Assembly: GCF_020745735.1 (NCBI RefSeq)
Contig: NC_083409.1
Span: 10,762,978-10,826,977, forward strand
DNA from: Hemiscyllium ocellatum
Lineage: Eukaryota
DNA: 64,000 bases
Direction: 5' to 3'
Shown: piece after piece, positions 14,722 through 64,000 of the stretch
How the letters are laid out: every line of letters begins with the position of its first letter
Position numbering within the stretch: the stretch's first letter is position 1
The notes under the pieces: model-generated
Seen by the model: only the letters and a program-made list of their open reading frames with translations
Told to the model about the DNA's origin: nothing
Databases searched by the model: none
Program-made: the position numbers and the translations under genes

Positions 14722-14781
14722 GGTGTGTGCTCCTGTCCCTGTGCCTGGTTCCTGATAAACTCTCCCTTCACTGGGCTCTGC

Positions 14782-21735: not shown

Positions 21736-21769
21736 AATTCCATATGTTTCTATGTTTATGAACAGTCTC

Positions 21770-22980
21770 TCAAACATAGAAACAGAGGAACTAGGAGCAG
21801 GAGGAGGCCATTCAGCCCTTCGAGTCAGCTCTGTCAGTCAATATGACCATGACTGATCATCCAACTTAGTCTCCTGTTCCATTTTTTCTCCATAACCTTA
21901 ATCCCTTTAGTCCTAAGATCTATACCTGTCGCTTTCTTGAAAACATTTAATGTTTTGAGCTCAACTGCTTTCTGTGACAGAATATTCCACTAGCTTCCCA
22001 CTCTCTGGCTAAAGAACTGTTCCTCATCTCAGTCCAAAATGGCCTTTCCATTTTCTTTAAACTGTAATTCCTGGTTCTGGACTCTCAAGTCATCATGAAC
22101 ATAATTCCTGTATTTTCTGGTCTTGTTCTGTTAGGATTTTACAGGTTTCAATGTGATTCCTCTCAAATTTCTAAACTCCAGTGAATATAATCCTAACTGA
22201 TCCAGTTTCTCATCAGATCTAAGTGCTGTCCTTCGGAATCAGTCTGGTAAACCTTCGCTGCCCTCCCTCCACAACCAGAACATCCTTCCTCAGGTAAGGA
22301 GACCAAAACTGCACACAACAGAAACATAAAATCACACAGTACAGAAGAGGCCCTTCAGCCCATTAACTGTGTACTAGCCAAACTACAGTAAACCTATACC
22401 AGTCCCACTTTCCAACATCAGACCCATAGCTTGAATGTTCTGATATTTCAACTGCTCACCCAACTCTTTTTAAAGTTTGTGAGGTTTCCCACGTCAACTA
22501 CCCTCCCAGGATGTGCGTTCCAGACCCCCACCACCCTCTGGGTAAAAAACACTTTCCTCAAAACATCTGAAACCTCCTATCTTTGACATTGAATGTGAGC
22601 CAACTTGTTCTTGACCTTCCCAAGAAGGAGAACAGCTGCTTTCTCTCCTCCCTGTCCATTCCCCTCATAACCTTATACACCTCTACCAGGTCCCCCCTCC
22701 ACCTTCTCTGCTCTGAAGAAAACAACCCGAGCTGATCCAATTTCTCTTCATCACTGAGATGTTCCATCCCACACAACATCCTGGTGATTCCCCTCTGCAC
22801 CCCATCCAGTGCAATCACATCCTTCCTACAGTGTGGTGACCTGAACTGCACACAGTACTCCAGCTGTGGTCTCACCAATGTTCTGCTTAACAGCAACATC
22901 TCCTCCTGCTGTTATAACCAATACCTGACATGACAAAGGCAAGTGTCCCCTGTGCCTTCATAACTGCTCTGTTAACCTGT
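21770..22980 (-). mobile_element. Two CR1 3' fragments
   Basis: LVRPQLEYCVQFRSPHCRKDVIALDGVQR ORF 22558-22899; tails near 21770 and 22320. Confidence 0.8.
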
Positions 22981-23049
22981 CTTGCCATTTTCAGGGATCA
23001 GTGGAGAAGCACCCAAGATCACTCTGTTCCTTTGTGCTTCCTCAGTTCA

Positions 23050-26000: not shown

Positions 26001-26500
26001 CACTAACTTCCTCATTTGGTTCCCATCCCTCTGCTACACTATTTTGAACGTGATCAAACATATCCCACAGGACACTGGTTCCAGTCCTGCCCAGGTGTAG
26101 ACCACTCGATTTGTAATTGTCCCACCTCCCCAGGAACCAGTCCCAATGCCCCAAAAATCTGAACCCCTCCCTCCTGCACCATCTCTCAAGCCACGCATTC
26201 ATCCTGCCTATACTTTCATTTTGACTCTGACTAGCACATGGCACTGGGAGCAATCCTGAGATTACTACCTCTGAGATCATACATTTTAATATGGTTCCTA
26301 ACTCCCTAAATTCTGCTTGTCCGCCCTCATTCCATTTATTACCGATATCATCGGCGCTTACATGCACCATCACAGCTAGCTGTTCACCTCCCCCTTCAGA
26401 ATGTCCTGCAGCTGATCTGAGACATGCCTGAGCCGTACAACTGGGAGGCAACATGCTATTCGTGAGTCTTGTCTTTGACCACAGAACCGCCGATCTACTC
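23050..26500 (-). mobile_element. Long decayed CR1 (ORF1 esterase, endonuclease, RT, 3' end)
   Basis: VVISGLLPVP..MNAWLERWCRREGFRFLGHW (esterase); GNSDHNSISF; MDFRNAFDKVPH..SKFADDTKIGG. Confidence 0.88.
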
Positions 26501-29500: not shown

Positions 29501-29510
29501 TCAGAGTTTT

Positions 29511-29819
29511 AGATTAGATTGCTTAGTGTGGAAACAGGCCCTTCAGCCCAACAAGTCCAGACGGACCCTCCGAAGAGCAACCCACCCAGACCCATTCCCC
29601 TATGTTTACCGCTTCACCTAACACTATGGACAATTTAGCATGGCCAATTCACCTAACCTGCACTTTTTTAGACTGTGGGAGGAAACCGGAGCACCCGTAG
29701 GAAACCCACGCTGACATGGGGAGTATGTGCAAACTGCACACAGACAGTTGCCTGAGGTGGGAATTGAACCCGGGGCTCTGGCACTGTGAGGCAGCAGTGT
29801 TAACCACTGTGCCACCGTG
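29511..29819 (-). mobile_element. HE1-type V-SINE nested in CR1
   Basis: Minus strand cacggtggcacagtggttaacactgctgcc...; (AATCT)n tail at 29511-29520. Confidence 0.9.
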
Positions 29820-38899: not shown

Positions 38900-41800
38900 A
38901 TGAATGCTGACTCTCTGACTCTATGAACACTACCTAGAAAGCTGCCTAACTTTGTGTCATTAGCAAACTAGAGTATCTGACTTTCTATGTCATTATCCAG
39001 TGCATTAATAAATAATATAAATAATTGAGGTGTGCGCACACATTCCTATTGAACACCACTGGTCACATCCTGCCAATTTCAGCAGTTACCCATTATCTCT
39101 GTTTTCTGTCACCTGTCACTCAACCAATTTCGGTATGGCAGTATTTTAGCCTCAATTCTGTGGATTTCTAACTGAGTTGAACAGTTTCTTACATGGGATT
39201 TTATCAAATGCCCTCTGGAAGTGCCTATAAACAACATCCATTGACATTACTGTCTCCAGTAATTTTGTTTCCTCTTCAAAAATGTTCAATGAGATTTTTC
39301 ACCATGACCAACTTGTCATGAATCCTTGCTGATTCTCCCTGATTAACTGATCATTTTCAAGGTCTTCAGTTACCCCCATCCTTGATTATAGACTACAACA
39401 ATTTCCACACCACAAACGTTGGCTTAATGACCTGTAATTCCCTGGCTTTTCTCTGACATCTTTGTTAAATGTGAAATGAAATTTGCAATTTTCCAGTTCA
39501 GAGGTACGACTCCTGAATCCAGGTAACTCTGAAAGATTATAGTCAGGGTGTCTGCAATGTGGTTTATTACTACTTTTTACCCTCAGGTTCTGAGGATTTG
39601 TCACTCTTTAGTTCCATTATTTTCCTTATTACACATGTTCTATTGACATTAACTTTATTGAGGTGACACAGTGGTTAGCACTGCTGCCTCACAGCACCAG
39701 AGTCCCAGGTTCAATTCCAGCCTTGGGCAATTGCCTGTGTGGAGTTTGCACATTGTCTGCATGGGTTTCCTCCTACTATCCAAAGATGTGCAGGTCAGAT
39801 GAATTGGTCATACTAAATTGCCCATAGCGTTAGGTGCATTAGTCAGAGGGAAAATGGGTCTGGGTGGGTTACTCTTCGGAGGGTCGGTGTGGACTGGTTG
39901 GGCCAAAAGGCATGTTTGCACACTGCAGGGAATCTAATCAGTCCCTGACACAGATCCTCTGTTAATTCCTTTGGGACTTCAGGCAAGTCCTCTTCCTTTT
40001 CTACTGCAAATCTTGAGGTAAAGTATTTATTTAACATGGCTGTCATTTCCCCATTGTCACTGACAATATCCCTCACTTTCAGTCTTTAATGGCCAACATT
40101 GCTCCTGACCTCCCAGCTTCCCTTTTATGGAACTGTAACATTTCTCCTGATTGATTTTGTTACATGTTTCCTTTCAGAATCCCTTTTGGTAGCTCTTAGA
40201 AGCTGATATGTGGCCCTTTTGTATCCTTCCCATTCAGCGGAATCTGTCCTTATTTTTTGCTTTTCTATAAGCCTTTTTTAACATTTTATTCTTTCCCTTA
40301 TCTCTTTAATTGACCATTGTTGTTTGTTCGCTTTTCCCTCTCAGGTATAAAGTAGCTTTGTTTTGTGTTGAATGTTCCTTTAAATATTCCCCACTGTTCT
40401 TCAGTTGTTTTACCCATGAGCTGATTTTCCCAGTTTATTGTGGACAGTTTCTGTCGCATCTTGTTAAAGTCGGCCCTTACCTTAATCTCAAAATCGAGCA
40501 GCTGATTCATTCTTTTTACTTTCAAATGCGACACTGAACTAGATCATGTTATGATCACTATTTGATAAATTTCATGCACAAATAGTTACGAACTAAATCT
40601 GGCTCATTATTCATTACTAATTCCAATATTGCTTGTCCCCTTGTTGTATCCAGGACCTATTGCTGTTGGAAACTATTCTGGACACACAGCAGCAATTCAC
40701 TACCTTTCTGACAGAGGGCTTGTCTGTCTCCCAATCTAAGTTAAAGTTAAACTTCCCCATTAATAATACACTGGCTTTGCTACACACTTGTCTAATTCCT
40801 CCATTTATATAATCCAGCACCTCAGAGCTGCTGTCAGGGGGGTCTGTATCCAACATCTACTACAGTTTTAGATCCTTTCCTGCTCCTCAGTCCCACTGAT
40901 GTTTTCCCTCATTATGACCTCCCTCACCATTGAAGCCATTTTTTCCCTCATCAATGAAGCTGCTCCACCTCTTCTGCCATTTCCCATATCCATCCTGTGA
41001 ACCTTCTAACCCGATAGATATCGTTCCCAATCTGAATGATTCTGCAACTATGGCTCAGTAATTGATCCGGTACCACAATCTTAAATTTGAATTTGTGCCT
41101 GCAGATTATTGTATTTATTCCTTACGCTCCGTGCATTCGTATGTAGGACTCTTATTTGGTCCATTCACTGGACTCTGTTCCTCAGCACTGATGCTGTACT
41201 CACCTCTTTCTTATTTCTCTCCATCTGTTTAATCAATATCCTTCTGATAGCTTTCCAGATATTGTCCAAATAGGGCTTTTGCCGATTTTTGCTGATGTTG
41301 TTGGTCCCAACACAGACAACAACAACTGGATCCTCAACCGCCCCCACCCCCACCCCCCACCCACCCCCCCCCCAAGTCTGTTATACTTAAAAGCCGGCTC
41401 GAGATGCCCTTACCTTGAAACCAGGCAGGCAACACACCATGTGGGGCTCTCAATCCTGCTCACAAAGGATGCTATCAGTTCCCCTCATTATCAAGACCCC
41501 TCTTTTCTTTATGCTCCCCCAATCTGAGTGGCCTCCTGGACCATGGTGCAGTGGTTTCCTTCGTTCATTCATAGGAAATGGACATCTCTGGCCAAGCCAG
41601 CAATGACTGCCCTTAGGAGTCATCGAATCATAGAATCCATACCGTGTGAAACAGGCCATTCAGACCAATGAGTCCACACCAACATTCTGAAGAGCATCCC
41701 ACCCAGACTTGTCTCCCTACCTTATCCCTGTAAATCTGCATCTCCCATGGCTAATGCACCTAACCTACACATCCCTACATTTTCCCCAGTTTAGACATTA

Positions 41801-42290: not shown

Positions 42291-42849
42291 GGAGTTTTTA
42301 ATTTATATTTAAAATTTGCTGCTGGTCTTTAGTTTTTAATCTGTAAAATATTTCCGTCCAGGAGACAGAGAATGTGCCAGCACAGGAGGAGGCTGTTCAG
42401 CCCCTCGTGTCAGTGCTAGCTGTTTACGAGCCTCAATCACAATGAACATCTCCATTGAATGTCTGTTGTCAGGAAGTGATTGAGTCTGTTTTTAGAGACA
42501 GAATAACGGACAAATATGAACTGGTCCGAGAGAGTCAGCATGGATTGACAAAGGTTCAGACATCTTTAACTAACCGGGTTACACTTTGTTAGGAGCTCAC
42601 TAGTGTGGGATATAAGGGAATGTCGATGGCTATTGTCTATAGGGAATTCCAAAAGATATTTAAGAATGTTCCACAAAAGAAACATTGATTCAGATCTTAC
42701 ACTCCACAACCATCTGATGAAGGAGCAGCGCTCCAAACGCTAATGCTTCCAAACAAACCTGTTGCATTAGAATCTGGTGTTCTGTGATTTTTAACATTTA
42801 CATAACAGTCCAACACCGGCATCTCCAAATCATGGAATTGGATGGAATT

Positions 42850-43772
42850 TGAGAAATGCATTTACGTTGGGTCAGGAATGAGTCTGTCTAGGAGACAGAG
42901 AGGAAGGATAATGTGCATGTGTTCCAATGAGCCAGATGTGAGTAGTGGTATTCCCAGGGATCTGTGCTGGGACCACAGCTTTTCACGATATTTCTCAGTG
43001 ACTTGGATGAAGAAACAGAGAGCCGTATATCCAAGATTATTGATCACACTGAGTGAGGCAGCTTGGAGGAGGTCACAGAGATAGGGAGGGTGGAAGAACA
43101 GGGAGCAGATTGAGAACAAGGATGGGAATTTGAAAATCGAGGTGTTGCTGGACCAGGAGCTGATGTCAGTCAGCTAGGATTGTGTGGTTATAGTGGGGTG
43201 GGGAGGCATGGGCAGGAGTATGGGGTGGACTTGGTGTGAGTTTGAACACAGACAGCAGAGTTTGGAATGAGTTGATGTTTACGGAAGTCAGTGGCTGTGA
43301 TGTGGGCCTGGATAACATTGGAATGGTCTCAAAAACATGGTTGAGATTTTCAGTGGCTGATAATTGTGATGTGGAGGATTTGGGCCTCAAATCAGCCCAA
43401 AGATGAGGCCAAAGTTGTAAAGAGTCTGGTAGAGCAGCAGACAGTGCTCAGGGAGAGGGATGGAGTTTGTACCGGGAGCTGAAGAGGATGGCTTTGATCT
43501 TCCCAATGTGTTTCCCAGTGAGCCTGGCTCCTCAGTCCTGACTGCTCTTAGCTGCTGTGATTGTCACTGATTGGACACTTATTATTAGAGATTCTGACCA
43601 CAGCAGAAAGCCCCAGTGTAAAAAATAACTGCAAAGACTGTCAGAGTACAAGGTTGAAACTTCACCAAGAGAGGAAGTGAAAGAAGGAGCTCGGAGCAGT
43701 TGGGTGTTTGTTACTGAGATGGGAGAAAACTGTGAACCGTCTGCACTCCCTGGAATCTGACAGCACAGGAGG
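42850..43772 (-). repeat. Inverted duplicate of ~19785-20690
   Basis: E.g. 19840-19900 tcagtaacaaacacccagcagctccgagctccttctttcacttcctc is the reverse complement of ~43673-43718 gaggaagtgaaagaaggagctcggagcagttgggtgtttgttactga; includes unique sequence plus shared LINE fragments. Confidence 0.88.
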
Positions 43773-44516: not shown

Positions 44517-46959
44517 CCATGGGTTTGGAAGGTGCTATCTGAAGATCGGTGATGAATTTCTGCAGTGCATCTTATCAATAATATACACTGCTGCTATGGA
44601 GCGTCAGTGACGGTGAGTTTGGATGCTTTGAGAATGCGATGCCAATCAAGGAGTTTGCTTTGCTCTGGATGGTATCAAGTTTTTTGAGTGGATAAGAAAG
44701 ACATAGGATACAATCGACATAGATAGGAAAGGTTTCAAGGGATATGTGTGAAATGCAGGCAAATAAGATGAGTTCACTTCAGAAAACCTGGTCAGCATGT
44801 AGAAGTTTGGCTTAAGGGTTTGTTTCTGTGCTGTATGACTCTGTGACACTATCAATCTATGAATGTTGTTGGAGCTGCACCTGTCCAGGCAAGTGGGGAG
44901 TATTTGCTCACACTCCTGACTTGGTTGACAGGCTTTGGGGGATCAGGAGGTGAGTTACTGGATGCAGTATTCCTAGCCTCTAACTTGCTCTTGTAACCAC
45001 TGTGTTTCTTTGGTGAATCCAGTTGTGTTTCTGGTCAATGGCACCTCAAGAATGTTCATAGTGGGGATTCAGTGATGGTAATAGCATTGATTATCAAGGG
45101 GCTATGTTAAGATTGTCTCTTATTGGTGATGGTGATTGGCTGGCATTTGCATGGCACCAATGGGAAATGTCACTTCTCAGACAAAACCTGGATATTGTCC
45201 AGATATTGTTGCATTTGCACGTGGACTGCTTCAGTATCTGAGCAGTTGGGAAGAGTGCTGAGCATTGTGCAATACGAGTTTGCCTTGAGTTGCAATATCT
45301 GTTCGGGGTCTGTCCTATTTAGTACGGTGATAGTACCACACAACACAATGGAGGGGATTCTCAATGTGAAGGTCAGACTTTGTTTCCACAAGGACTGTGT
45401 GATGGTCACTCTTACCAATACTGTCAAGGACAGATGCATCTACAGCCACAAGATTGGTGAGGATGGGGTCAAGCATCTTTTTCCATCTTTTGGTTCCAGC
45501 TGCAGAGCCAGTCCCTCAGCTACATCCATGAGGAACCAACCAGCTCGATCAGTAATGCTGCTGCCGAGCCACTCTCAGTGGTAGACATTGAAACCCCCCA
45601 TCCAGTGTACACTCTCTGCTGTCATCACCCTCAGTGCTTCCTCCAAATATTGTTCAACATCCAGGAGAGACTGATTCATCAGCCGAGGGAGCAAGATATC
45701 TTGTAATCACCAGGAGGTTTCCTCGCCCATGTTTAACCTGGTGTCATGAGTCTTTATAGGGTCCAGAGCCAACTTTGAGACTTCCCAGGGTAACTCCCTT
45801 CTGGCTGCAGACCACTGTGTCATCAGCTCTGCTGGGTCTGCCTTTCTGGTGGGACAGGACACATGCAGGGACAGTGATGGTGGTGTCTGGGACATTGTCT
45901 GTAAGGTGTGGTTCTGTGAGTATGGCTGTGTCAGGCTGTTGCTTGAGTCATCTGTAAGACAGCTCTCCTGAATTTGGCACTAGCTCCCAGATGTCAGTAA
46001 GGAGGACAGAGCAGGGTAGACAGGATGTTTCTGTCATTGTCTTTTCGGTGTCTAGATCGATGCCTGTGGTCTCATTTCTTTGTTGAAACATTGTCATAAT
46101 TGATACAACTGAGAGCCTTGCTCGGCCATTTCAGAGGGCACTAGAGAGTCAACCACATTGCTAGAGGACAGTGCCGTGTACCTCGGCAGTACATTCCGAC
46201 CTCCCCACTTCCCCATTCTGTATATGGAAGGCGGAAGCCTGCCAGCAGGATATTCACCCGCAGGAGCTATCACAGCCCGTGTGCAATTCTGTCCCCACAT
46301 TAAATCCACACAAATCCTGAATTCACATAACACCTTCAATGTCCAAACATTCCAAGAATGTTCACAAAGTTGCAGTAGAGGGATGGGGGAGAGGGTGGAG
46401 GAACATAAGAACTAGGAGCAGGAGCAGGCAATTCAGCCCCTCGAGCCCACTCCACCATTTAATACAATCATGGCTGATCCCATCTCAGACTCAACTCCAC
46501 TTTCCTGCCCACTCTCCATCATCCTTTAACCCATTACCCATTAAATATCTGTCCATCTCCTCCTTGGTGTGAGACAGGGAAGGGACCACTCCATTTCAGA
46601 AAAGACTGACCATGGAAGGGGAAGGAGAGGGGAAGGGATTGGAACATGTTGTGAATGGACAGGATGGGTCAGTGGGTCAGAGCCTGTCCTGTGCCTCCAA
46701 CTCACGTGATGATCTGAGGATCTCCTCTCTCTGCTAGGCCTTCACGGAATGAGGTTTGTGTCCAAATCAGTCCCCAGTGAGAATAGGCCAACAGCACAGA
46801 ACAGCACAGAACTGCCCTTCATTTGACCAGAATCTGTCCATCTTCCTGAGAGAGGCCAAACCTGGTCAACGTGGAAATAGGGCCTTACTCCAGGAGAGAC
46901 GGGGTCAGGGTTAACATCCATTAGTGGGACAGAGCAGAGGGAGATTTATCCTGCATTCA

Positions 46960-47660
46960 CTGTCACCACCCAGGACACTGTCAGAAAGAGAGAGCAGTGA
47001 GGCAGAGAGAGAGATGGAGGGAAAAAAAGTGTGTGTGTGTGGTGTGTGGTGTGTGAGTGAGAGAGAGAGAGAGAAAGAAAGAAAGAAAATGAGAGAGAGA
47101 GATAGAGGGACGAGCATCTGATACGGTGTAAGATATGTGAGGGGACCGAGAGAGGTAGAAGGAGGTAAAAATGGTGAGGTTGAGGGATAGAGAGAGAAAC
47201 AAGATGTGAGACAGTGTGACTGAGAGGGATGGAGAGAGACAAAGACAACAAGGAGAGAGAGGAAAAAGAGACAGGATGGGTGTGAGACTAAGCATGAAGA
47301 GAGTTGAGAGGGAGGGTAGGGTTGAGTGTGAGAGAGAAGAGAGATGAGTATGGGTAGATTTATAATGACAGAGAGAGAGGGAGAGAGACTGCAAATTGGG
47401 TTGAGAGAGGGAGGAGAGAGAAAGAGGAGGAATTAGAGAGTGACAGATAACATTTGGAGGCTTTTAATTGAAGTGAGAGAGGGAGCGAGTAACAGAGACA
47501 GTGAGAGATGGAGAAACAGATGATAAGATGGAAGTAGAAAGCATCAGTGAGTTGGAGAGAGTGGCTATGAGACAGAGTGCGTGTGTGGTTGTGAGAGAGG
47601 GAGAGAACATGAAAGAGATTAACAGTGGGAGAGAGAGATAGAGGTAGAGAGAAAGAAATG
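46960..47660 (+). repeat. GA-rich low-complexity tract (counterpart CT-rich ~15850-16180)
   Basis: Imperfect (GA)n/(GT)n runs seen directly. Confidence 0.8.
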
Positions 47661-48192
47661 GCAGATGTGAGTCAGAGGAGAGAGGGACAAGTCCTGGTCA
47701 CCACACTCTGGGAAGAATGTGATGTACCTGAGAGGGTACAGGGGAGATTTCCAGGATGCTGCCTGAATGTGAGCTTTGGGCACACCTCCTCCCTGCCCAG
47801 CCCTGTTGATTTTTATATGTTTCAATCAGATCCCCTCTCATCGTTCTGAACACGAGTGAGTCCATGGCCAGGCGAGTTGGAGAGTGAGAGGGAGAGTTGA
47901 GAAGAAATGTTTTCACCTAAGGGTGTTGGGAGTCTGGAACTCACTGCCTTAAAGGTCTGGTTGAGTCACAAACTCTCGTGACATTGGAGCAGTGTTTAGA
48001 TTTCCCTTGTGTTGCTGTACCCCCAGGGTAATGGGCCCAAGAGCTGGAGGATGGGATTAGTGTCATCAGATCTTTGTTTACCAGCACAGACACAATGGAC
48101 CAAATGCCTCATTCATGCTGTTTTCACATCAATGACTCTGAGCAGAGAGAGTGACAGGAGAGAGAGAAGAGAGAAGAGGAAGTGTGAGGGGC

Positions 48193-48272
48193 TGACGTGG
48201 CTCTCTCTGCCTGATGCCATTTACATACTGAGGAACACCCAGTCAGACTCTCACAGGCTGCAGCTTTATAAA
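48193..48272 (+). promoter_or_regulatory. Second (inverted) V promoter
   Basis: TGACGT 48193-48198, ATTTACAT 48219-48226, TTTATAAA 48265-48272; reverse complement of 14782-14861. Confidence 0.72.
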
Positions 48273-48331
48273 GCAGAGCCAGTGAAGGGAGAGTTTATCA
48301 GGAACCAGGCACAGGGACAGGAGCACACACC

Positions 48332-48380
48332 ATGATTTCACACATCCAGCTGATCTGGCCCCTGGCATTCTGTGTCGCAG
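48332..48380 (+). CDS. Second Ig light-chain leader exon, opposite orientation; downstream V lost in the assembly gap
   Basis: MISHIQLIWPLAFCVA(G), identical to 14673-14721; GT at 48381-48382; only 32 nt of intron before the Ns. Confidence 0.88.
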
Positions 48381-48412
48381 GTACAAATCTCTCTCCTTCC
48401 ACCTTGAATCTT

Positions 48413-48425
48413 NNNNNNNNNNNNN
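48413..48425. other. Assembly gap (13 N)
   Basis: 13 consecutive N; the sequence on the two sides is not continuous with the expected leader intron. Confidence 0.99.
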
Positions 48426-48952: not shown

Positions 48953-49258
48953 CACGGTGGCACAGTGGTTAGCACTGCTGTCTCACAGCGCCTGAGACCC
49001 GGGTTCAATTCCCACCTCAGCGACTGACTGTGTGGAGTTTGCACGTTCTCCCCCGTGTCTGCGTGGGTTTCCTCCGGGTGCTCCGGTTTCCTCCACAGTC
49101 CAAAGATGTGCGGGTCAGGTGAATTGCCGTGCTAAATTGCCCTTAGTGTTAGGTAAGGGTCAAATGTAGGGGTATGGGTGGGTTGCGCTTCGGCGGGTCG
49201 GTGTGGACTTGTTGGGCCGAAGGCCTGTTTCCACACTGTAAGTAATCTAATCTAATCT
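48953..49258 (+). mobile_element. Young, intact HE1-type V-SINE
   Basis: A box TGGCACAGTGG, B box GGTTCAATTCC, full V domain, many intact CpGs, (AATCT)n tail. Confidence 0.92.
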
Positions 49259-50119: not shown

Positions 50120-51610
50120 CTTACAGGAGGCTGGAAGAACACAGCAAGTCAGGCAGAATCTGGAGGTGGAGCAGTCAACATTTCGGGTATAACCCTTCTT
50201 CAGAACTGCAGGTGGGGGTAGGGGGGGCTGCAAATCAAGGTGGGATCGGTTGTTTGCGTGGGTGGAGGGGAATGGTGGAGTGGAAGGTATTGATGGATGA
50301 ACACAGGTAGAGGGTTGGAAGTGCTTAGTCGATGGGAGGAATGAATCCATATGGTGGCTGGAAGGGAGGGTCCGTAAGTGGAATAGAATGGAGGAGGGGG
50401 ACTGGAAAGGGAGTCGAAAGTTGGGAAAGGCAGGCTTTTTGAAACTGGAGAACTCAATGTTGATTCCTCTGGGTTGTAAGCAACCCCGGGCAAAAGATAA
50501 TTATTTGTTCCTCCAATTTGCAGTCTGATTGCTTATGGTAATGGAGGAGGCAGAGGATAGTCATGTCAGAGAGGGAATAGGAAGGGGAATTGAAATAGGC
50601 AGTGACTGGGAGGCCAGGTCAGCCTTTGTGAGCATGGCTGAGATGCTCATCAAAACATGTCCTTAGTTTACGTTTGGTCTCACCGATGCAGAGAAGACCA
50701 CAACGGGTGCACCGGATACAATAAACTAGGTTGGAGGAGAGGCAGGTGAACCTCTGTCTGACCTGGAAGGACTGGGGCCCTGAATGGAAATGACAGGGTT
50801 TGGTGTGTGGGCAGGTTTTGCATCTTTTACAGTTGCAGGGGAAGGTACCAGGGTTTTGTTGGGGAGGAGGGGGTAGGTGTGAAGTGTGGTGAAAACCAAG
50901 GATTGGCAAAGGGAACAGTCCTTGTGGAAGGCAGAGAGGGTGGGGAGGGGAAGATGTTCTTGATAGTGGGGTCGAGCTGGAGTTGTCAGAATTGTTTGAG
51001 GATGATACGTTGGATGCGGAGATTGATTGGACGTAAGGTGAAGACAAGGGGGACCCTGTCTCTATTGCATTTTGGAGGGGAGTGTTTAGATTTGGGGAGC
51101 AGGGAATGGAGGAGGTGCGGTGGAGGGCTTTCTGGATGGCAGAGGTGGGAAAAGTACATTGTTCAAAATAAGTGGACATCTGGGACACTTGGGAGGGGAG
51201 CATCTCCTCGTTCGAGCAGATATCAATGAGATGGAAGAATTGGGAAAACGGGATGGTGTTCTTGCAGGATACTGGTTGGGAGGAGGTGTTGACCAGGTAG
51301 TTGTGTGAGTCTGTGGATTTACAGTAAATGTCTGTTCCTAGACTGTCACCGGAGATGGAAATGGGGCAGTCAAGAAAGGAGAGGGATTTGTCCAAGATAG
51401 ACTACGTGAATTTGAGGGTAGGTTGGAAGTTGTTAGCAAAGTCGATGAACAGCTCCAGTTCAGCCTGAGTGCAGGATGCAGTACTGATGGAGTCACTGAT
51501 GTAATGGTGGATGATTTGGGGAATGGTGCCTGTGCATGTACTGGTGAGGTGTTGTTTGATGTAGCCGACAACAAGCAGACATAGCTGGGATCCATGGCCA
51601 CCCACTGGAT
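50120..51610 (-). mobile_element. Penelope-like element (RT C-terminal part + GIY-YIG endonuclease + terminal repeat)
   Basis: ELELFIDFANNFQPTLKFT; SLSFLD..DIYCKSTDSHNYL; CNCKRCKTC; FTCLSSNLVYCIRCTRCGLLCIGETKRKLRTCFDEH. Confidence 0.9.
50172..50208 (-). ncRNA. Minimal type I hammerhead ribozyme motif in the Penelope terminal repeat
   Basis: 5'-CAGUU CUGAAGA A GGG-UUAUA-CCC GAAA UGU U GACUG-3': core CUGANGA/GAAA, stem II GGG/CCC, stem I CAGUU/GACUG. Confidence 0.65.
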
Positions 51611-53298: not shown

Positions 53299-56200
53299 TG
53301 GACAGTAACAAGGCTGGTGCAAAGTAAGAGCAGGTGTGATTAGGGATCTGAAAGTGCGAATGTGATGTTTCAGTTCTTCCTGGACATCTCAAGGTTTGTA
53401 TGAACTTTTGGTCTCCTAATTGCAGAAAGAATATAAATCCATTGGAAGTGTTTCAGAGGAGTTTTATCCGACTGATCCCTGGTATGAGGGGGCTGTGTGG
53501 TGAGGAAGGATCGGAAAGGCTGGCCTTGATCTCACTGGAGTTTCAAAGAGTGGGGGGTTTTCCTGTCCCACTGTATTCTCCAAACCCTTACCTGACCCCC
53601 TCTTGGGTCATACCCTCCTGCCCCTTACTAACATGGAATTGGACTGCCCAGTCCTGAGGCTTACACCTTCCATCTGGAACAAAGTCTCCAGGTAGCTCTG
53701 ACCCTCCCTGATGTATCAGGATTCTTACAACTCAGCTTCCAATCGAAACCCCCTGAGTGGGAGTTGCTGTAGATTTATACAGTCACTACAGATGTATTTA
53801 CCCTGAATCATTTCAGTTTAATGAACAAATGCTGATCCCACTTACAAATGAAAGAAATCAATTCTTTCATGAAACTAGTAATTGTCCTCAGTCTCTGGAT
53901 CAATGTTTCAGTGCTTTTCATTTCTAGGATTTCCCTATTTGAGGTTTCCTAAGCATACTATTGATATGGTTCCTTACACAAAGCTCTTCCCAGCTGATCT
54001 GGTCAACAGACTCCTGTCCCCTTGTTTATTATTTTGCTATTTTCAAACCAAGTGCATGTGCAGGCTCCCATCAGCTGAAGTGACAGTTCCAAACCAGTTT
54101 GGAAAAGCAAAAGTAGACCTCCTTCCCCCAGTTCACCGAACTCCCACATTGACCAAACCTCCCAGCATCCCCCTCTGTGCCAGCTGCACTGAGTGCCAAC
54201 TGCAGGATATAGGCTGCCCTGTATTTATACTGGTGCTAATTGATATCACTTTGTTCTGTCGTGCTATTAGAGTCATAGAGACAGCACAGAGACAGAGCCT
54301 TCGGTTCAACTTGTCCACGCTGACCAGATATCCCAACGCAATCTAGTTCCACTTGCCAATGCTCAGGATCTGGGTTAAGTTAGATCATTTCTCAGTCTGA
54401 AGCTTCCTTCTTTCAGCCTGAGAAATACGTTACTTTTATAACCAACAAATGTGACTTTAATGCTGGAATCTGTTTTGAAGATTAATGGGCTCAATGGTTT
54501 GATTCAATGTGGTAAGATAAGAAATATCTGTGTCACTTGCTGTAATTCAGTCTTCTCTAACCAATCTCTTCAGGGGCCAGGATGAGTGTGAGGAGATTGG
54601 GTTTTGATGGAACTACCCACAGACTCAAGTCAAAAGAAGCAAAGCAAGAAAGACAGGTGGATCGAATACAAGAGAGCACATTATGAGAGAAAACCAAAGG
54701 AGAGAGTGACAACACTGAATTGCTTCTTGTGTCATCCTCTGCGCCCTTACGTTTCACAGTGTCAGCTCCACATCCTTCCATTGGCTTTGTCATTGAGAGC
54801 CAACGGTTCCTTTCCCACAGCCCTTTTTAAAATGGCCTGCCCAGGGAATCACTCAGACAGAGAATATTCACCTTTTCTGGGAAGGTTGGAGTAATATTGG
54901 ATGTCGATGAGCTGCTTTCTCAGCCTTCAGGGTCTGACAGAAGGATGTGTGTAGGCTGTGGATTCTGGAGACAGATCACTGAGATGTTCCTCACTCCCAT
55001 CAACACCTGACTTTATCCTGAAATCAGTTTCTATTCTTCATTATAAAGTACCCCCACCAGTTTCAGACTAGACATTTCACACCCAGCCCCCATTTCCTCA
55101 CATTGGAATCAAGAACCAAACTTGCCCCATCTCAGGATTGCCCTCTGAATGTGGTGTCAGTATGCTAATGCTGTGTTTGATGAAAGAGCCACAGTGGAAT
55201 CTGGGACTGAATCCAAGGGTTTCTGATCCACCAGCAGCCTCCTTGCTGTGTGATATTCTGTTTGGATAAGATTTCAGCCCCATGGTTCCCACTGATACGA
55301 GAACCATGGAGTAAGATTGCTGGAGCCACGTGTGGACTGAGGAACACAACAGTCAGGACAATGAGCTGCTCTGGAATCCATCCTGAGCCCTGGATGGTTG
55401 TCACTGAGATGGTCCAGGGGCTACAGAATATGACAGCAGAAAGTGGAACCAGTTTATCATTGACTGTACCCCCCAAGCCATGACTCCCAGACTGAACATT
55501 CTCAATCTGACTCCAGGGGGACACAGGGCAATTCCATCTCATTTGAAGAGTAAAGAAAACCCAGGTCTAATTTATGGAATATTATTACCCAAACCCTGTC
55601 GAATTGTTATTTTGAGTTCCAAGATTCTGCTGATCATATTGATCAATAGAGTGTCCCCAGTGACCCTGATCTGAATTGCTTGGCTCAGGATCTTGCTGTC
55701 CCTGATGGATGGGTTGGTGTGGAGGGGGAATTGCCATCAGAATATTTTGTTCCAGGGATGGATCAAGTTAGTATAGTGGATGACAAGGTGGCTCAGTGGT
55801 TAGCACTGCTGCCTCATAGTGCCAGGGATCTGCGTTTGATCCCTGCCTCAGCAGAATATCTATGTGGATTTTGCACATTCTCTCCAAATACAAATCAAAC
55901 ACTGTATGGAATATTTACTTTGCAAACCCTGTGGTATTGTTATTCTGGGTAGTAAGATCCTGCTGGTCAAATTGATCAATAAAATGCGAACTGAACTGCT
56001 TGGCTCGGGATCTTGCTGTGCTGAAAGGATGTGTTGGTGTTCAGGGGAATTCCTATCAGATTATTGTGTTCCCCATTGCCGCCTCTATTCTCCCCTTCCT
56101 GCTCCATACCTGGGGGTGGGGTGGAGCTTTTCACTTCGTACACCTATCCCTGAGGACTCAGCTCTGGCCATTCCCAAAGCACACACAGAGACAGAGACTG

Positions 56201-59200
56201 AATCTTCTTCATCTTTGTTCCCTTTTCCAGATTGACATTGACAGAAAACAGTCAGCAATTAACAGCCCAGACAGAGGAAGCTGCACAAATTCACAGCCAC
56301 AATAGAGCTTGAGGAAAACACTTGTGGAGATTTTCTCAATAACATGAGAATCCTGTCCCTTTAAACAGTGACAAAACCTTAAATTGGAACTGGCAGCTGA
56401 GCAGAAAGGAGGTCTGTTTTACTGAAACAGAGACTTTTGAGGTTCACATTGTTTTTGCACAGCTGACAGTCTTCAGCATCTTTGGAGAGGTTTTACTTGA
56501 CATCGCAAGTTAACACTGTCCCCATCAAACACATCCAGGTCAGGGAAAGCATGGGACTAGATAAAGAGTAAAGTTTTCTCTACACTATCCCAACGACCAG
56601 CCTTAACCCCTGAAGCTCAGAAGTATCTCCAAGCCAGTCCTGAGAAGGAAGAGAGTTGAAATCAGTGCTGACAATGACCTTTGACCTGCCAGCTCAGCCC
56701 TGTTCTATTTAAAGTTGTGTCTCCTCTGTGGACTGTCTCAAACACTCTACACACATTCTGATCTCCTGATGCTCTTGCTGAGGGGAGAGGGGAGGGTCAC
56801 GTGGTGAGGGCACAGGAGAAGCGAGCGTTGGACTCCCAGTCAGACCCAGAGAGGGTCAGCAGGCTGCTGACACTGTAGGTGCTGTCCGAAGCTCGCAGGT
56901 AGTTGCTGGTCTGAACCCCATCCGAAATGACTGCACCGTCCTTCTTCCACTGCACCTCCAGCTCATCGGGATAGAAGTGATTGGCAAGGCACACCAGGGT
57001 GGCAGTGCTCTTGGCATTGACCTGCTCCGGGGAGGGGGGCAGCAGGGTCAGCTTGGGCTGAGAGTTGTCACGGACTGAAAGACAAGAGAAACAATTTTAT
57101 TCCCTGCCTTTTGAAGGTACATAAACTCTCTGAACATTAACTGCTAAAACGTTTGAACATTTGTACCCAGTACCTAGCAGACCTGACAAAGCACTGGCAT
57201 TTTAAAAATTGCTTTTTGGGACATGTACGGCACTGGCAGAGCCAGTCGCTGCCCATCCCTAACTGTCTCTGAGAAGGTGATGGTGACGCAGCAGAAAGAT
57301 AAGGGACAGTCCTGGACCACCATTTGAGGAATGAATGTGGGCAGCTGGAAGGGCTATCAATGTGGGAGCATTTTAGTGACAGTGATCGGACCTCAGTGAG
57401 ATTGAGAATAGGGATGGAAATGGAGAACCGTGGAGCAAGTGTAAAAGTTTTGATTTGGGAACAATCCATTTTACCAAACTGTGTGGTAATTTGATAAAAG
57501 AGTACTGGAACCATCGCCTTGATGGGAGATCAGTGACAGGGCAGTGGGAGGTCTCCAAGGATGAGACAGGCACAGCGATCATTCATATTCTTTTCCCAAA
57601 AGCGTAAGAGTGGCACTCCCAAAAAGAGAGTCTCAGCAAAGATGTGAAACTATCGATATGATGTGGAGGCTCTGGTGTCCGACTGGGGTGGACATGTTCA
57701 GGAGTCACATGACACCAGGTTACAGTCCAACAGGTTTATTTAAAATCACGAGCTTGTGAGACGCTGCTCCATCTTCAGGTGAAGCGACTTCAGTGCTGAA
57801 GGAACAGAGCTCTGAAAGCTTGTGATTTGAAATAAGCCTGTTGGATTATAACCCGCTGTCGTGTGACTTCTGACCTCAAATGAAGCCCAGTTAGAGCACA
57901 ATGAGAGAACTGTGTGCAGTTCTGGTCACCACATTGCAGGAAGGATGTGATCCCCCTAGATATGGGGAGAGTGGAGGGTTTTGTCAGGAATGAGGAGAAT
58001 TAGATTTGAGGAATGATTGGTTTGGCTGGGACTGGTTTCTTTGGAACACAGGAGGCTGAGGGGAGATTTGATCGATGGTGTGTAAAATGATGAGGGGTCT
58101 GGATAGAGTGGGTAGGAAGGACTGATTTCCATCAGCACAGAGGGCAATAACCATGGGGAGAGATTGAAATGAATTGGGGGCAGGGTTCGAGGGGAGTTGA
58201 GGAGTAATTGTTTCACCCAGTGGCTGGTGGGATCAGGACCTCACTAGCTGAAAGGATGAGAGCGGCAGAAACCCTCATCACATTGAAAAAACACTTGGAT
58301 ATTCACTTGAAACATCAAAGCCTCCAGAGCTATGGAGCAAGAGCTGGTATGTGGGGTGGAGTTCGACAGCTCTATAACAAACCTCCGATCACTCACAGCT
58401 CGGGAGAACTTTATCCAACAACATTGGAACAGAGTTGGATCAGCACACTTCAGGAAGGAGTCACGTTGGGTGTCCATGTAGAAGGTTCTAGATTTTGTTT
58501 CAAACCTTTCAGCTCAGCGCTGGGTAAGGTCAAATGTGAGGGTGCAAAGAGTCTCAGTGTCTTGGGATCAAACAGTGTCACTGCTCTTAATGATCCCATG
58601 TTCCCTGGAAGATGGAAGCGTGTATCCAATGGGCAAGGGTCAGGTTCAGGAGACTCCAACCTCAAAGAAAGACTTGCATTTATGTTGCACCTGCCTCCAC
58701 CTAAGGATGTCGCAGTGGCTCTTTCCATCAGACTGTGCTCAGCAAGATCCCAGAGAGCTGGGTGACAATGAGGCGAGGATCCGATTTTTAGTGATGCTAA
58801 TTAGGGAATCAATATTGACCAGGACACCAGGAGACACCGTCCTGCTGTCTGTCTAATAGAGCCATGGAATGGCATCTCTGATATCTGAAAGGTTCCGAGT
58901 GCATCAAAAGAGAGACTTGTATGTCAGGCTCTCCCAAAGCATTTACAGAGAGTGAGGGACTTGTCTGGACACTGGTCACTGTTGTAATGCAGAAAACATA
59001 ATTTGCACACAGCAATATTGCACAAACATAAATGAGATTACGAAGCATGTTCAGTGATGTTTCAGGGATAAATATTGACCTGAAGTCAACCCAAAGAGAA
59101 AGCAAATGGGTTCACTTGCACAGAATGTGAGAAAATGAAAGGCACAGAAGGTGGGAGTCGTGGTTAGTGATGGGTTTGATTGTTACCAGAAAATAAGAGG

Positions 59201-62200
59201 AAGGGTCAGAATTTGTGAATGTCATATTGTAACAAGGCAATACAGACAGTAGAAATAACCTAAAGTCTTTGTATGATAACGCATTCAGAATAAGGTAGAC
59301 AGAGTGATGCCACAAATTGAGGTTCCCAAGGACTTTAAAATCATTAAAGTGACGCAGGGCTCAAGAGAGGTTAGTAAAGTTCCCAAAATAATTAATAGGA
59401 CATAGATTATGGAAAGGGTCAGAAAATTATTTTTAGGCACAGTGCATAAGGGGACAACTATGAAAAGGAGGACAGTCAGTGCAGGACTGAGGGTGTTGTA
59501 CCTGAAGGCAGGGAGTATCCGAAATGAGGTAAATGAGCTTGTAGCGCAGATTGGAATTGGCAGGTATGATGTTTTGAGTATCACAGAGACCTGGCTGTAA
59601 GGGGTTGAGGGCTGGGAATGAAATACTCAAGGATGCACATCCGATTGACAGGACATGCTGATGGGCAGATGGGGGTGGGGTTACCTTCTTGGTAAGAAAT
59701 GAAATGAGATCAATCACAAGAAGGGATTTAGAGTTGGAATGCATTCAATCTGTGTGGGTAGAGGTGAGGAGTTGCAAGGGAGAAAGAGCATGATGAGAAC
59801 TTAGCACAGGACCCCCCAGCAGCAGTCAGGATATGAGGAAGAAAATAAATCAGGTGATAGAGAAGGCCCTGCTACAATAGTCATGAGGGACTTCAATATG
59901 CAGGGAGACTGGAAAATTAAATTGTTTGGGGATCTCAAGGGTAGGAATTAATGGAATGTTTACGACATGGTTTTTAGAGCAGCTTGTGGTAGAGATCACT
60001 ATGGAACAGGCAATTCTGGATTGGGTGATGTGTATTGAAGCAGACCTGATTAGGGAACTTAGGGTGAAGGAATCCCTTGGGGGCATTGACCGTAATATGA
60101 CAGAATTCACCCTGCAGTTTGTGACAGGGAATCTGGAGTCAGTTGTACCGGTAATGCAATTAACTTAAGGTAACTACAAAGACATGAGGGAGGAGCTGGC
60201 CAGAGTTGGTAAGAAAGGAAGCTGAGCATAAGAGAGAATGGAGCAGCAATGGCAGGAGTTTCTGGGGGTAATTTGGGAGGCAGAGCAGGAATTCAACCCA
60301 AGGAAGAAGAAAGGTACTGAGTGGAGGCCAAGGCAACCATGGCTGATGAGGGAAGTCAGGGTCAGCATAAAAGCAAAAGAAAAAACAGGCAATGTGGTGA
60401 AGATTATTGGGAAGCCTTTAAAAAACAGCAGAGAGTAACTAAAAAAAAGTAAGGGTGGGTGTGTAAATAAAATATAAGGGTCAGCGAGTTAGTAACATAA
60501 AAGAATATTGCAAGAGGTTTTCTTTAGATATATGAAAGGCAAGAGGGAGTCAATAATAGAAATTGTACCACTGGAAAAGGCAGAAGTAGTAATGGGGAAC
60601 AAAAAAATGGTGGAAAAAGTGCATCGGTGCCTTAAATCAGCTTTCACAGTAGTGTGGCAATGCTGCTCATTTCACAAGTTTGAGTTGTCCTTGGATTTTT
60701 TTTCAAGAGGGGTTGTAAAGGCAGAGGTTCCAATTTGTCTGGGTTAGGGACTTTGCTCATGGCTAACAGATACTGCCTAAGGCAACAGTCAGGGAAAAGG
60801 CTTTTAGGTTTTATATTAAACAGTTGTCCAATAAAAGGAGAATGGCCAGTTCTTCCAGTTTGCTGTTTTTGACAAACAGTCGGTTGGAAGCTCCTGGATA
60901 AAGAAAGCTGCTGGTGAGAAAGGTTCCCCAATTCAACATTTTCCAGTGGACTCACTTTCTGAAATTCCTCTCCTGTAAGAACCCCTGTGTTTATATTTAC
61001 CTTTTTGCCAAGGCTATTACAGCATATTGGAACAACTCTTTGTCAAGTTACATTTTTTCATAAGTTGGGTTTTCAAATAGTTAAGTTATTCTAAATTCTG
61101 TTTTCTTTTGATTGTAAATAAATACTCTTTTCCTTCAAGCTGAGTGGTTTGGCCAGTTGTATCATTCCTGGAATATCCAGGTTACATTTGCTGAACACAA
61201 TTCGAAAAGGTAAGGTCTGGGCTGCATTCTTAAAATGTTTTGAAGGGTCTGGCCTGGTCCATAACAATGTCACAGAGTCCTACAGCATGGAGACAGGCCA
61301 TTTGGACCAAACTGGTCCATTTACGCTAATCCTGCACTTGGCCCATATCCTTCTGAATCCTTTCCTTTGCTGTATTTGTCCAAATGCCTTTTAAATGTTA
61401 TTAATGTACCCACCTCAACCACTTCCACTGGCAGCTCATTCCATATGCGAACAATCCTATGTGTAAAAAGGTTGCCCCTCAGGTTCCCTTTTATTCTTTC
61501 CCCTCTAACCTTAAACTGATGCGCTCTAGCTCATATTCGCAAACCTTGGGGAAAAGACCGAGTGAATTCACCCTATCCATGCCTCTCATGATCTTATGAG
61601 GTCCTCCCTCAGTCTCCTACACTCTAAAGAAAAAAGTACTCTCCCTTTAACCCAAACGATTGAATCCTGGCAACATGCTTGCAAATTTCTTCTGCACTCT
61701 TTCCAGTTTAATAACATCCTTCCTGGAACAAGGTGACCAAAACTGAACACAATATTCCAAGTGTGGCTTCACCAGTGTCCTGTATAACTGCAACATAACT
61801 TCCCAACATCTGTAGTCAATGCCCTGACTGATGAAGCTCTCTTCTCTGCTCTATTTACTGTGACTCCATTTTCAGAGAACTGCTTATCTGAATTCTAAGG
61901 ACCCTCTCTTCCACTATATTCCTTAAGGTCCTATCATTCACCATGAAACTCCTACCTTGCTTTAAATTTCCAAAATACAAGACCTCACATTTATCTGTAT
62001 TAAACTCTATTTGTCATTTCTCGGCCCACTTCCCCAGCTGAGCAAGGTCCTGCTGCAATTTCTGATAACAGTCCGCACTGTCCACGATGCTGCTTATTTG
62101 AGTGTCATCAGCAAACTCACTAACCATGCCTTGTACATTCTCATCCAAAACATTGTTATAGATAACAAACAGCAATGGGCTCAGCACTGACCACTGAGGC

Positions 62201-64000
62201 ACTCCACTAGTCACAGGCCTCCAGTACAATAAGGATTCTTCCCCTATTACCCTGTGCTTTCTACCATCAAGCCAATTGTGTATTCAATTTGCCAGGTCAC
62301 CTTGGATTCCATGCAATCTAACCTTCCATAACAGCCTGCCATGTGGAACCTTATCAAAGGCCTCACTGAAATCCATATAGACCACGTCTACCATCCTGCC
62401 CTCATCAACCTTCCTGGTCAATTCATCAAAGTAACTTAACAAATTTGTGAGGCATATTATCCCACTCACAAAGTCATGCTGACAACTCCTAATCAAATTC
62501 ACTCTTTCCAAATGCATGTGTATCTTATCTTATCAAACAACCTACCCACCACAAATGTTAAGCTTATAATTCCCAGGCTTTTGTTTTTCAGCCCTTTTTG
62601 AACAATGGCACAGTCTTCGTTATCCTCCAGTCTTCTGGCACCTCACCTGTGGATAACCATGATGCTTAAATATCAGCCAGTACACCTGACCTTCAAGAGA
62701 GTTGGGAGCAGAAGTGAGTGGAGAGGGCATCACTAAGGTGGAGGGGTTGAGGCAGCTGAAAGGTCTGAAGGTGGATAAATCATTCAGACCCGAGGGACTA
62801 CACTCCAGAGTTCTGATGGAGATAGCTAAGGTAATTGTAGGGCCATTGGCTGTGATCTTTCAGAAATCACTGGAGTCAGGAGTGGTCCCAGAAGACTGGA
62901 AAATAGTGAAAGTAACATCCCTGTTTAAGAAAGGAGGGAGGCAGAGATGGGACATTATAAGCTGGTTAGCCTGACCTCGGTCATTGGTAAGATTTTAGAG
63001 GTCTACCTAAGGGTGAGATTGCAGGTATTTGGAATCTCACCCTTAAGTCTGGTAAAATTGCAGCCTGGTAAAATTGGGCTGAGTCAGCACAGCTTCATCA
63101 AAGGGAGGCATGCCTGATAAATCTGTTAGAAATCTTTGAGGAGGTAACAAGTGAGTTAGACAAAGGAGAGCCAGTGGATGTGATCCATTTTATTTCCACC
63201 AGGCCTTTGACAGGGTCCAATAAAGGAGACTGCTAAGTCAAATCAGAGCCCATGCTGTCAGGAGCAAGGCACTGCGAAGTGTAGAGGATTGGCTGGCCGG
63301 CACAAAGGCGAGAGTAGGGACAAAGGGATTTTTTTCTGGATGGCTGGTGGTGCTTTGTGGCGATCTGCAGGGATCTGTGTTGGGACCACAACTATTCATA
63401 TTATCCATTAACAATCTGGATAAGGAAATGAAGATATTGTTCATATGTTTGTAGATGACACAAAAATTGGTGAAAGGACAAGTGGAGTTGAGGAAGTGGG
63501 GGAGATTGCAGAAGGACTTGGTCAGGCTGGGAGAATGTGCAAAGAAGTGGCAGGTGGAGTACAATGCGGGGACTTGTGAGGCTAGATACTTTGGTGGGAA
63601 GAATAGAGACACAGACTGTTTTCTAAGTGAGGAAAGATTTCAGAAATCTGAAGCACAAAGAGAATTGGGAGTCCTTGCTCAGGTTTCTCTGAAGGTTAAC
63701 GTGCAGGTTCACCATTGGCTGTTTGAAAGGCAGTTACAGTGTTAGCATTAACTTTAACATCAGAGGTGTACTGCTGCGTTTGTATAAGTCTCTGATCAGA
63801 CCACATTTGGAATTTTGGTCTCCTCTTTAAGGAAGGATGTGCTGTCATTGGAGAGGGTCCAGAGGAAAAAGTGAGAAAGAATAAGAATGATCCTGGGAAT
63901 GAAGGGGGTGTCATATAAAGAGCGGTTGAGGATTCTGGATCTGTATGCAATTGAGTTTAGAAAGATGATGGGGGAATCTTATTGAAACTACAGAATATTG
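53299..64000 (+). repeat. Direct segmental duplicate of 1-10699 (offset ~53.3 kb), including all TE fragments of that interval
   Basis: Position 1 tggacagtaacaagg = 53299; 10690-10699 cagaatattg = 63991-64000; colinear throughout with scattered substitutions and 1-nt indels. Confidence 0.97.
56747..57074 (-). CDS. Ig light-chain C exon, copy 2; frameshifted as assembled (GG 56803-56804 versus GGG in copy 1)
   Basis: Acceptor at 57075-57076, TAG 56747-56749. Same protein as copy 1 except K-S-T versus K-G-T and one synonymous change; 328 nt. Confidence 0.93.

Follow-up and report, generated by a model that had tools for sequence, protein, structure and literature searches.

The window, that is, the whole 64,000-nt stretch of Hemiscyllium ocellatum DNA that was analysed (contig NC_083409.1), contains the kappa light-chain gene parts listed in Table 1. 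Cluster 1 lies on the minus strand and has a promoter, leader, V exon, J segment and C-kappa exon; a second C-kappa exon on the same strand ("cluster 2") lies towards the other end, and a further V gene start is found on the plus strand beside an assembly gap. One V exon and one J segment were found in the window by blastn, and pattern searches returned one 12-RSS, that of V1, and one 23-RSS, that of J1; there is thus no J of cluster 2 in the window, which the initial annotation had named as a joining partner. The C exons of clusters 1 and 2 differ at two positions of the coding sequence (AAG GGC against AAG AGC, and GAC against GAT). Relative to all its relatives, V1 lacks one C in the C run at 14451-14454, which shifts the frame in FR1, and each C exon also lacks one base of a homopolymer run. 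A pseudogene label for V1, C1 and C2 was rejected as unsafe, these being single-base homopolymer frameshifts that differ between the two C copies. Homopolymer errors are present in the assembly, and for this reason "functional" is not a safe label for the plus-strand gene.

Table 1. Kappa gene parts, repeats and conserved elements in the 64,000-nt window (window coordinates)
Feature	Position	Strand	Remarks
C-kappa exon of cluster 1	3452-3779	-	G missing in G run inside 3541-3564
J1 (13680-13715) with 23-spacer RSS (13716-13754)	13680-13754	-	
12-spacer RSS of V1	14162-14189	-	
Cluster-1 V exon (V-set)	14190-14487	-	
Cluster-1 promoter, 5′ UTR, leader exon (14673-14721) and intron start	14641-14874	-	Counterpart of the plus-strand gene start
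Cluster-1 copy of conserved upstream element	19791-20139	-	Composite site at 19876-19885
Right arm of inverted duplication, outer part	42384-43418	+	Matches within 19786-20693 and at 27084-27370
Conserved non-coding element, 4.6-4.9 kb upstream of plus-strand ATG	43419-43767	+	Sequence conservation
Predicted PU.1/IRF composite site GGAAGTGAAA in plus-strand upstream element	43673-43682		
Upstream arm of plus-strand copy	46603-48179	+	Diverged, GA-rich expansions; homologous to 14875-16564 (-), 76-86%
Proximal promoter and 5′ UTR of kappa V gene	48180-48331	+	Equal to 14722-14874 (-) except two homopolymer indels
TGACGTGG in promoter of plus-strand copy	48193-48200	+	
Octamer variant ATTTACAT in promoter of plus-strand copy	48219-48226	+	
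TATA in promoter of plus-strand copy	48265-48272	+	
Leader exon 1, MISHIQLIWPLAFCVA plus one base	48332-48380	+	ATG at 48332; 49/49 identical to 14673-14721 (-)
GT donor after leader exon of plus-strand copy	48381	+	
Leader intron, first 32 nt, then contig end	48381-48412	+	32/32 equal to start of 185-nt cluster-1 intron
Assembly gap, 13 N	48413-48425	.	Flanks discontinuous
Direct repeat of 1-10699, period 53,298 nt	53299-64000	+	Match limited by window at both ends
Second C-kappa exon (cluster 2, C1-set)	56747-57074	-	C missing in C run inside 56795-56814

At 48180-48412, the plus strand carries a second copy of the cluster-1 gene start, from the promoter and 5′ UTR through the leader exon to nucleotide 32 of the leader intron. 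When 46560-48412 (+) and the reverse-complemented 14641-16600 were aligned globally, the 233 nt of this block were free of substitutions and differed by two homopolymer indels of 1 nt each (GGGG/GGG near 48187-48190 and CC/CCC at 48278); the roughly 400 nt upstream of it (47780-48179) had 54 substitutions, an identity of 85.9%. The sequence adjoining the block upstream is about 86-89% identical to its cluster-1 counterpart, and farther stretches are 76-78% identical by blastn. The same leader peptide is carried by annotated Hemiscyllium and Chiloscyllium kappa chains, and the first 32 nt of the leader intron are invariant across four aligned C. punctatum loci, L001, L002 and L003 among them. 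The order by which a kappa V gene is recognised, an octamer-type motif and TATA followed by the family leader exon with its donor, is found in the plus-strand copy. Judged from its sequence, 48180-48412 is a real V gene start of the kappa (shark type III/NS4) family, oppositely oriented to cluster 1 and head to head with it on the same contig, with 33,611 nt from ATG to ATG. These results agree with the initial annotation, which had described a copy of the cluster-1 upstream region ending 32 nt into the leader intron at the gap, about 230 proximal nt free of substitutions with homopolymer indels only and more diverged distal sequence, and a head-to-head distance of about 33.6 kb.

The similarity between the two regions extends well beyond the promoter. 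Within one contig, the diverged inverted arm is collinear with the cluster-1 arm over about 6 kb, including the matches of 42384-42679 to 27084-27370 (79.7%) and of 42848-43772 to 19786-20693 (83%) obtained by blastn. On these alignments, the plus-strand copy and the upstream region of cluster 1 form the right and the left arm, respectively, of an old inverted duplication in head-to-head orientation. A fold-back or palindrome read artefact was rejected, as the arms are 33 kb apart and diverged. Over 2,961 collinear nt, cluster 1 and its orthologue in the bamboo shark Chiloscyllium punctatum, locus L001, have an identity of 93.7%, whereas the upstream DNA of the plus-strand copy outside the block is less similar to cluster 1, L001 and L007, at 83-86% in its proximal and 88-92% in its distal part. 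The plus-strand copy is old, as this upstream DNA falls outside the pair of cluster 1 and L001. No bamboo-shark orthologue of the plus-strand copy was found among seven C. punctatum contigs; L007 gives the longest match, yet is no closer to it than to cluster 1.

Under neutral drift, about 30 substitutions would be expected in the block, where none is observed, and the chance of 233 nt without substitution is at most 1e-12 at a neutral divergence of 11-14%. The block has identities of 94.0-97.4% to seven C. punctatum kappa V loci, and in two of these (L002 and L003) the DNA immediately upstream cannot be aligned and the block is still conserved. The identity gradient is a property of the whole kappa family, and marks a promoter and leader that have not decayed. 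Since the block is 94-97% identical in another genus beside unrelated upstream DNA, there is no pointer to conversion with cluster 1 specifically. Conversion between the two window copies may have occurred but is superfluous as an explanation: both carry the family consensus at variable sites, and at the four sites that separate L001 from cluster 1 both have the state shared with the paralogues. The gradient had previously been taken as a sign of selection or gene conversion; the part that holds is that the block was kept intact while its surroundings drifted, as was a second element farther upstream, and the part on conversion draws no particular support from a gradient that is family-wide. 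Nor does the gradient say anything on the V exon.

The second element, at 43419-43767, is 95.1% identical to its cluster-1 copy and 95.7% to positions 3268-3615 of C. punctatum L002, with flanks of 75-81% identity. The plus-strand copy thus has retained two family-wide elements, the promoter/leader block of about 230 nt and this upstream element of about 350 nt with its predicted PU.1/IRF-type site.

The run of N at 48413-48425 is the only one in the window. The sequence after it has no match to the remainder of the cluster-1 leader intron, the V exon, RSS, J or J-C intron, and none to the interior of any of the seven related kappa loci. Being unlike any kappa-cluster interior, the post-gap sequence does not continue the sequence before the gap, and a reading frame across the gap is meaningless. 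The 15.5 kb assembled after this discontinuous gap correspond to the 3′ flank and C exon of a minus-strand cluster, with no plus-strand J, C or other kappa part. Among the Logan contigs listed, none bridges the gap (pieces of 90-290 nt, best runs of 0.30-0.35 of words, paralogues matched at 90%); one 264-nt contig of high depth lies flush on 48291-48412 and extends 142 nt beyond, an overhang to be expected from a leader intron common to the family. The direct repeat (1-10699 against 53299-64000) has 98.5% identity, with 120 substitutions (1.1%) and 41 indels, and 31 of the 35 one-base indels are in homopolymers. One copy starts 4.9 kb after the gap, and the other lies 37.7 kb before it. In the second 53-kb copy, the plus-strand gene start would be expected to recur about 37.6 kb past the end of the window. 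Bionano Solve writes 13 N at joins whose contigs overlap or touch on the map, and gaps of this kind are known for artificial duplications at their flanks (10.1101/858365; 10.1101/2020.12.28.424581). If this gap is of the Bionano type, the map would leave no room for a hidden cluster of at least 11 kb, and the body of the gene would be elsewhere or nonexistent.

Here it is proposed, with a probability of about 0.55, that a further kappa V gene begins here, in an ordinary self-contained cluster whose body is missing at the assembly break. All seven related kappa V loci examined have a J in the same orientation 0.4-0.6 kb behind the V, with 12-RSS and 23-RSS present where the exact pattern matched, and nurse shark NS4 genes also have their own J behind the V and an octamer common to the members (PMC2193156). 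A self-contained partner cluster is the most likely form because all seven relatives have their own J. The plus-strand gene would be a working transcription unit, now or until recently. The window shows neither a V exon nor an RSS, J or C for this gene. Its V exon would be missing here because the contig breaks off after 32 nt of leader intron, and most likely a J and a C of its own on the plus strand would be missing with it; the sequence scaffolded after the 13 N would not be its continuation. Its rearrangement would proceed by deletion between its own V 12-RSS and its own J 23-RSS, in the usual shark way, with no need for the J of a neighbour. It is probably an ordinary neighbouring gene rather than evidence of a new mode of joining.

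Two other readings are both rather improbable. One is a truncated relic in which promoter, leader and intron piece were copied or survived alone and no V exon follows, left, for example, by a breakpoint of the roughly 53-kb duplication or by a later deletion. This would agree with the unrelated post-gap sequence, with a 13-N gap that may mean little or no missing DNA, and with the period of the direct repeat, which puts a possible unit boundary about at the gap; however, in a relic of the same age as the flanks the block should have decayed, yet the expected substitutions are absent from it, and the upstream element is still 95% identical. A relic would therefore require very recent truncation or recent conversion, and conversion onto a dead fragment could be an alternative source of the promoter identity. 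The other is an assembly artefact, either a misassembled contig end or one locus written twice at the 13-N join, in which case cluster 2 would be cluster 1 again and the true continuation of the leader would lie in the second copy, beyond the window. The exact Bionano number of N (if the assembly was scaffolded in that way), the direct repeat limited by the window at both ends and the large number of homopolymer indels, among them a frameshift in V1 and a different one in each C exon, are in its favour; however, 1.1% substitutions are high for one locus in a single-haplotype assembly, and the diverged collinear arm inside one contig means that the head-to-head placement is not a fold-back.

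The initial annotation had also suggested that the hidden V, if it has a 12-RSS, could be inverted onto J1 or the cluster-2 J, giving 13.7 kb for J1. This figure is the window position of J1, whose distance from the leader is about 34.6 kb. The geometry is right: the leader is on the plus strand and J1, C1 and C2 on the minus strand (for C2 this depends on the scaffold join), and the coding end lies left of the RSS both in J1 and in a plus-strand V at about 48.5 kb. If physically short, the gap would have room for a V exon only; no plus-strand J or C follows it, and zebrafish are documented to join segments of different clusters by inversion across 81 kb (PMC3014032). Against such use, a V exon or RSS of the plus-strand gene is absent from the assembled sequence, each of the relatives has its own nearby J, and reviews place shark V(D)J joining within clusters (PMC5192425; PMC12227049). 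An orphan inverted V that lacks its own J and C and undergoes RAG-mediated inversion to J1 or to the J of the next cluster is therefore very unlikely, and the specific form in which it has a 12-RSS and lies downstream of the 3′ end of a minus-strand kappa cluster, pointing at it, is slightly less probable again. If true, no earlier case of light-chain rearrangement by inversion between clusters would precede it among cartilaginous fish, and it would contradict the textbook account in which shark clusters rearrange only internally. If the V did lack its own J and C, the within-cluster-only rule for sharks would be directly testable at this locus; transcripts could be assigned to a cluster because the two neighbouring C exons differ in coding sequence.

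As assembled, the plus-strand copy is one more member of a large and well-known gene family, cut by an assembly break. Its main import is for annotation, as a kappa gene start stands without a body near V and C exons with probable consensus errors. The comparison also indicates that each kappa gene keeps an almost invariant promoter/leader block together with its own conserved upstream element.

Inverted V segments joined by inversion are found in mammalian V-kappa, and in zebrafish IgL, inverted V segments are joined across clusters by inversion (Zimmerman et al. 2008, PMC3014032). As in zebrafish, the V gene start described here is opposite to a neighbouring J-C tens of kb away, to which it could be joined by inversion only; in contrast, V, RSS and VJ-C transcripts have been shown in zebrafish (PMC3014032), whereas the gene start alone is present here and its relatives have their own J. 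The locus resembles Bionano 13-N joins in its gap length of exactly 13 N and in the long direct repeat, with near-identical copies, on both sides, and differs from those with duplicated contig ends in that the repeats do not abut the gap and have diverged by 1.1% in substitutions. In the literature searched, no description of a head-to-head arrangement with 33.6 kb between ATGs was found. The closest system is that of the V-J-C miniclusters of nurse shark NS4 and horn shark type III (kappa), described by Lee et al. 2000 (PMC2193156). Unlike these, the plus-strand copy is visible only from its promoter through the leader exon to the 32nd nucleotide of the intron. The likenesses between the kappa family described here and NS4/type III include an octamer-type promoter common to the members, many near-identical family members, a V with a 12-RSS followed by a J with a 23-RSS about 0.4-0.5 kb downstream, and a split leader with an intron of about 186 nt, compared with 185 nt in cluster 1 (PMC2193156).

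Cluster 1 contains a kappa V gene on the minus strand, and the 5' end of this gene recurs on the plus strand to the left of an N run, with promoter elements, a leader exon and the start of the leader intron (Table). From ~48180 to 48412, this block shows no substitutions relative to cluster 1 in global alignment and has two one-base homopolymer indels. The ~400 nt upstream of the block are 85.9% identical to cluster 1 and the stretches beyond 76-78%; at the divergence of the upstream sequence, the probability of 233 nt remaining unchanged is <=1e-12. The initial annotation was right in what it observed and the gene start is real: the copy has the identity gradient it described (0 substitutions in the block, 76-86% upstream), and the head-to-head placement at ~33.6 kb between ATGs is confirmed, with the two ATGs 33,611 nt apart on one contig. 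Because this contig carries both the plus-strand copy and cluster 1, their placement is independent of the scaffold join, on which the orientation of the copy relative to the second C exon (C2) does depend. The copy terminates an inverted duplication that is collinear but patchy, with 48412-42384 matching 14641-20693 and 27084-27370. An additional ~6.4 kb (20694-27083), probably transposon insertions, occurs only in the left arm; on the right, the corresponding matching blocks are separated by 168 nt.

Table. Kappa light-chain features and related elements in the window and in one Chiloscyllium punctatum contig (L002)
Feature	Position	Strand	Remarks
Promoter motif TGACGTGG	48193-48200	+	
Octamer variant ATTTACAT	48219-48226	+	
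TATA	48265-48272	+	
Leader exon	48332-48380	+	49 nt, ATG at 48332; followed by a GT donor and 32 intronic nt
N run	48413-48425		13 N, the only one in the window
Conserved non-coding element	43419-43767	+	349 nt, 4.6-4.9 kb upstream of ATG
Conserved element, cluster-1 copy	19791-20139	-	
Conserved element, L002 copy	L002:3268-3615		6.4-6.7 kb upstream of V start
Cluster-1 V exon (V1)	14190-14487	-	V-set domain confirmed
Cluster-1 12-RSS	14162-14189	-	
Cluster-1 23-RSS	13716-13754	-	
Cluster-1 J (J1)	13680-13715	-	
Cluster-1 C exon (C1)	3452-3779	-	C1-set domain confirmed
Second C exon (C2, "cluster 2")	56747-57074	-	

The second C exon belongs to a direct repeat (1-10699 against 53299-64000; period 53,298 nt, 120 substitutions or 1.1%, 41 indels), whose match is bounded at both ends by the window ends. 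The repeat reflects either recent tandem duplication of the entire unit or a single locus represented twice in the assembly, on both sides of the 13-N join. Compared with annotated kappa chains, C1 and C2 have different one-base deletions in homopolymer runs (3541-3564 and 56795-56814, both minus strand), and V1 lacks one C in the FR1 C run (14451-14454, minus strand). One-base indels between the direct repeats fall in homopolymers in 31 of 35 cases, as do both one-base indels that separate the promoter copies; CCC at 48278 is supported by short Logan contigs, from runs of at most ~4 thousand million letters each, with paralogues aligned too. The missing bases in V1, C1 and C2 probably reflect consensus errors in the assembly and not three dead genes, and these kappa genes cannot be called functional or pseudogenes from the current assembly. 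V1 is also one base shorter than its relatives after the conserved Cys (14190-14213, minus strand; TGT AGC AGG versus TGT CAG CAG / ATG CAG), with CDR3 codons SRITATL where relatives end QQDYSYP-like; this shortening may be real, as it lies outside any homopolymer.

What follows the plus-strand leader is most plausibly a normal partner cluster interrupted by a break in the assembly (probability about 0.55), because in all seven related V loci an own J follows on the same strand, 0.4-0.6 kb downstream, with 12-RSS and 23-RSS present where the exact pattern matched. Right of the gap, the sequence does not resume the cluster-1 leader intron (185 nt), and it matches neither the V exon, RSSs, J and J-C intron found elsewhere in the window nor the interior of any of the seven related kappa loci; the flanks are therefore not continuous. 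A 13-N run is the Bionano Solve mark for contigs overlapping or abutting in optical-map space, and artificial duplications are known to flank such joins (10.1101/858365; 10.1101/2020.12.28.424581). Against an ordinary cluster, the 15.5 kb right of the gap hold no plus-strand kappa part. If this putative mark, so read from the N count, implies that no space is left between the contigs, the gap cannot accommodate a hidden cluster of at least 11 kb, leaving a truncated relic, an orphan inverted V, or a join of overlapping or not truly neighbouring contigs. A relic and an assembly artefact are each rather unlikely. A ~300-nt short interspersed repeat (48953-49255, 29509-29819, 11086-11392, 39662-39939) has copies just right of the gap and within the J-C intron, with enormous word depth (up to ~1e7) in all four runs. 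At 50619-51395 (minus strand), a 258-aa open frame that carries Cys-rich motifs and matches nothing in Pfam may be a piece of a mobile element.

An orphan V used by inversion is very improbable. In both J1 and a plus-strand V at ~48.5 kb, the coding end lies left of the RSS, so that RAG joining would invert the intervening DNA and keep the signal joint; the proposed geometry with J1 is sound in this respect, although the distance from the leader is 34.6 kb and not 13.7 kb. The other proposed target, the J of cluster 2, would lie outside the window, since the window holds no second J (and no second V exon), only J1. Inversional inter-cluster joining has been documented in zebrafish (PMC3014032); in sharks, however, reviews state that V(D)J joining takes place within clusters (PMC5192425; PMC12227049), and the own J in 7/7 related V loci also speaks against an orphan V. 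No paper on head-to-head shark light-chain clusters was found in the searched literature. Beyond geometry, inversional use is conjecture, and this most striking proposal of the initial annotation is unsupported.

The plus-strand copy split off before the divergence of Hemiscyllium and Chiloscyllium, because cluster 1 and its C. punctatum orthologue L001 (93.7% identity over 2,961 collinear nt) are closer to each other outside the block (91-94.5%) than either is to the copy, which shows 83-86% (proximal) and 88-92% (distal) against cluster 1, L001 and L007. Under neutral drift, ~30 substitutions would be expected in the block since this split, and 0 are observed. The 349-nt element, about 5 kb upstream of each V start in the window, contains the PU.1/IRF composite site GGAAGTGAAA and shows 92-96% identity among paralogues and across the two genera; the plus-strand element has 95.1% identity to the cluster-1 copy and 95.7% to L002, with flanks at 75-81%, and is a candidate cluster enhancer. 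The plus-strand copy would thus be a gene working now or until recently.

A V1 fragment matches C. punctatum kappa V regions with up to 91% identity, and seven contigs of this species (L001-L007) were compared. The sharp step from ~86% to 100% is the edge of a promoter/leader block kept family-wide, because the block is 94.0-97.4% identical in all seven loci, even in L002 and L003, where the DNA immediately upstream is unalignable with the window. At all four block sites differing between L001 and cluster 1, both window copies carry the paralogue-shared state. The initial annotation took the gradient to suggest selection or gene conversion; the block shows an undecayed kappa gene start and does not show conversion between the copy and cluster 1, which may nevertheless have occurred. 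A promoter/leader block conserved across the family agrees with the nurse shark NS4 genes, which share the octamer (PMC2193156).
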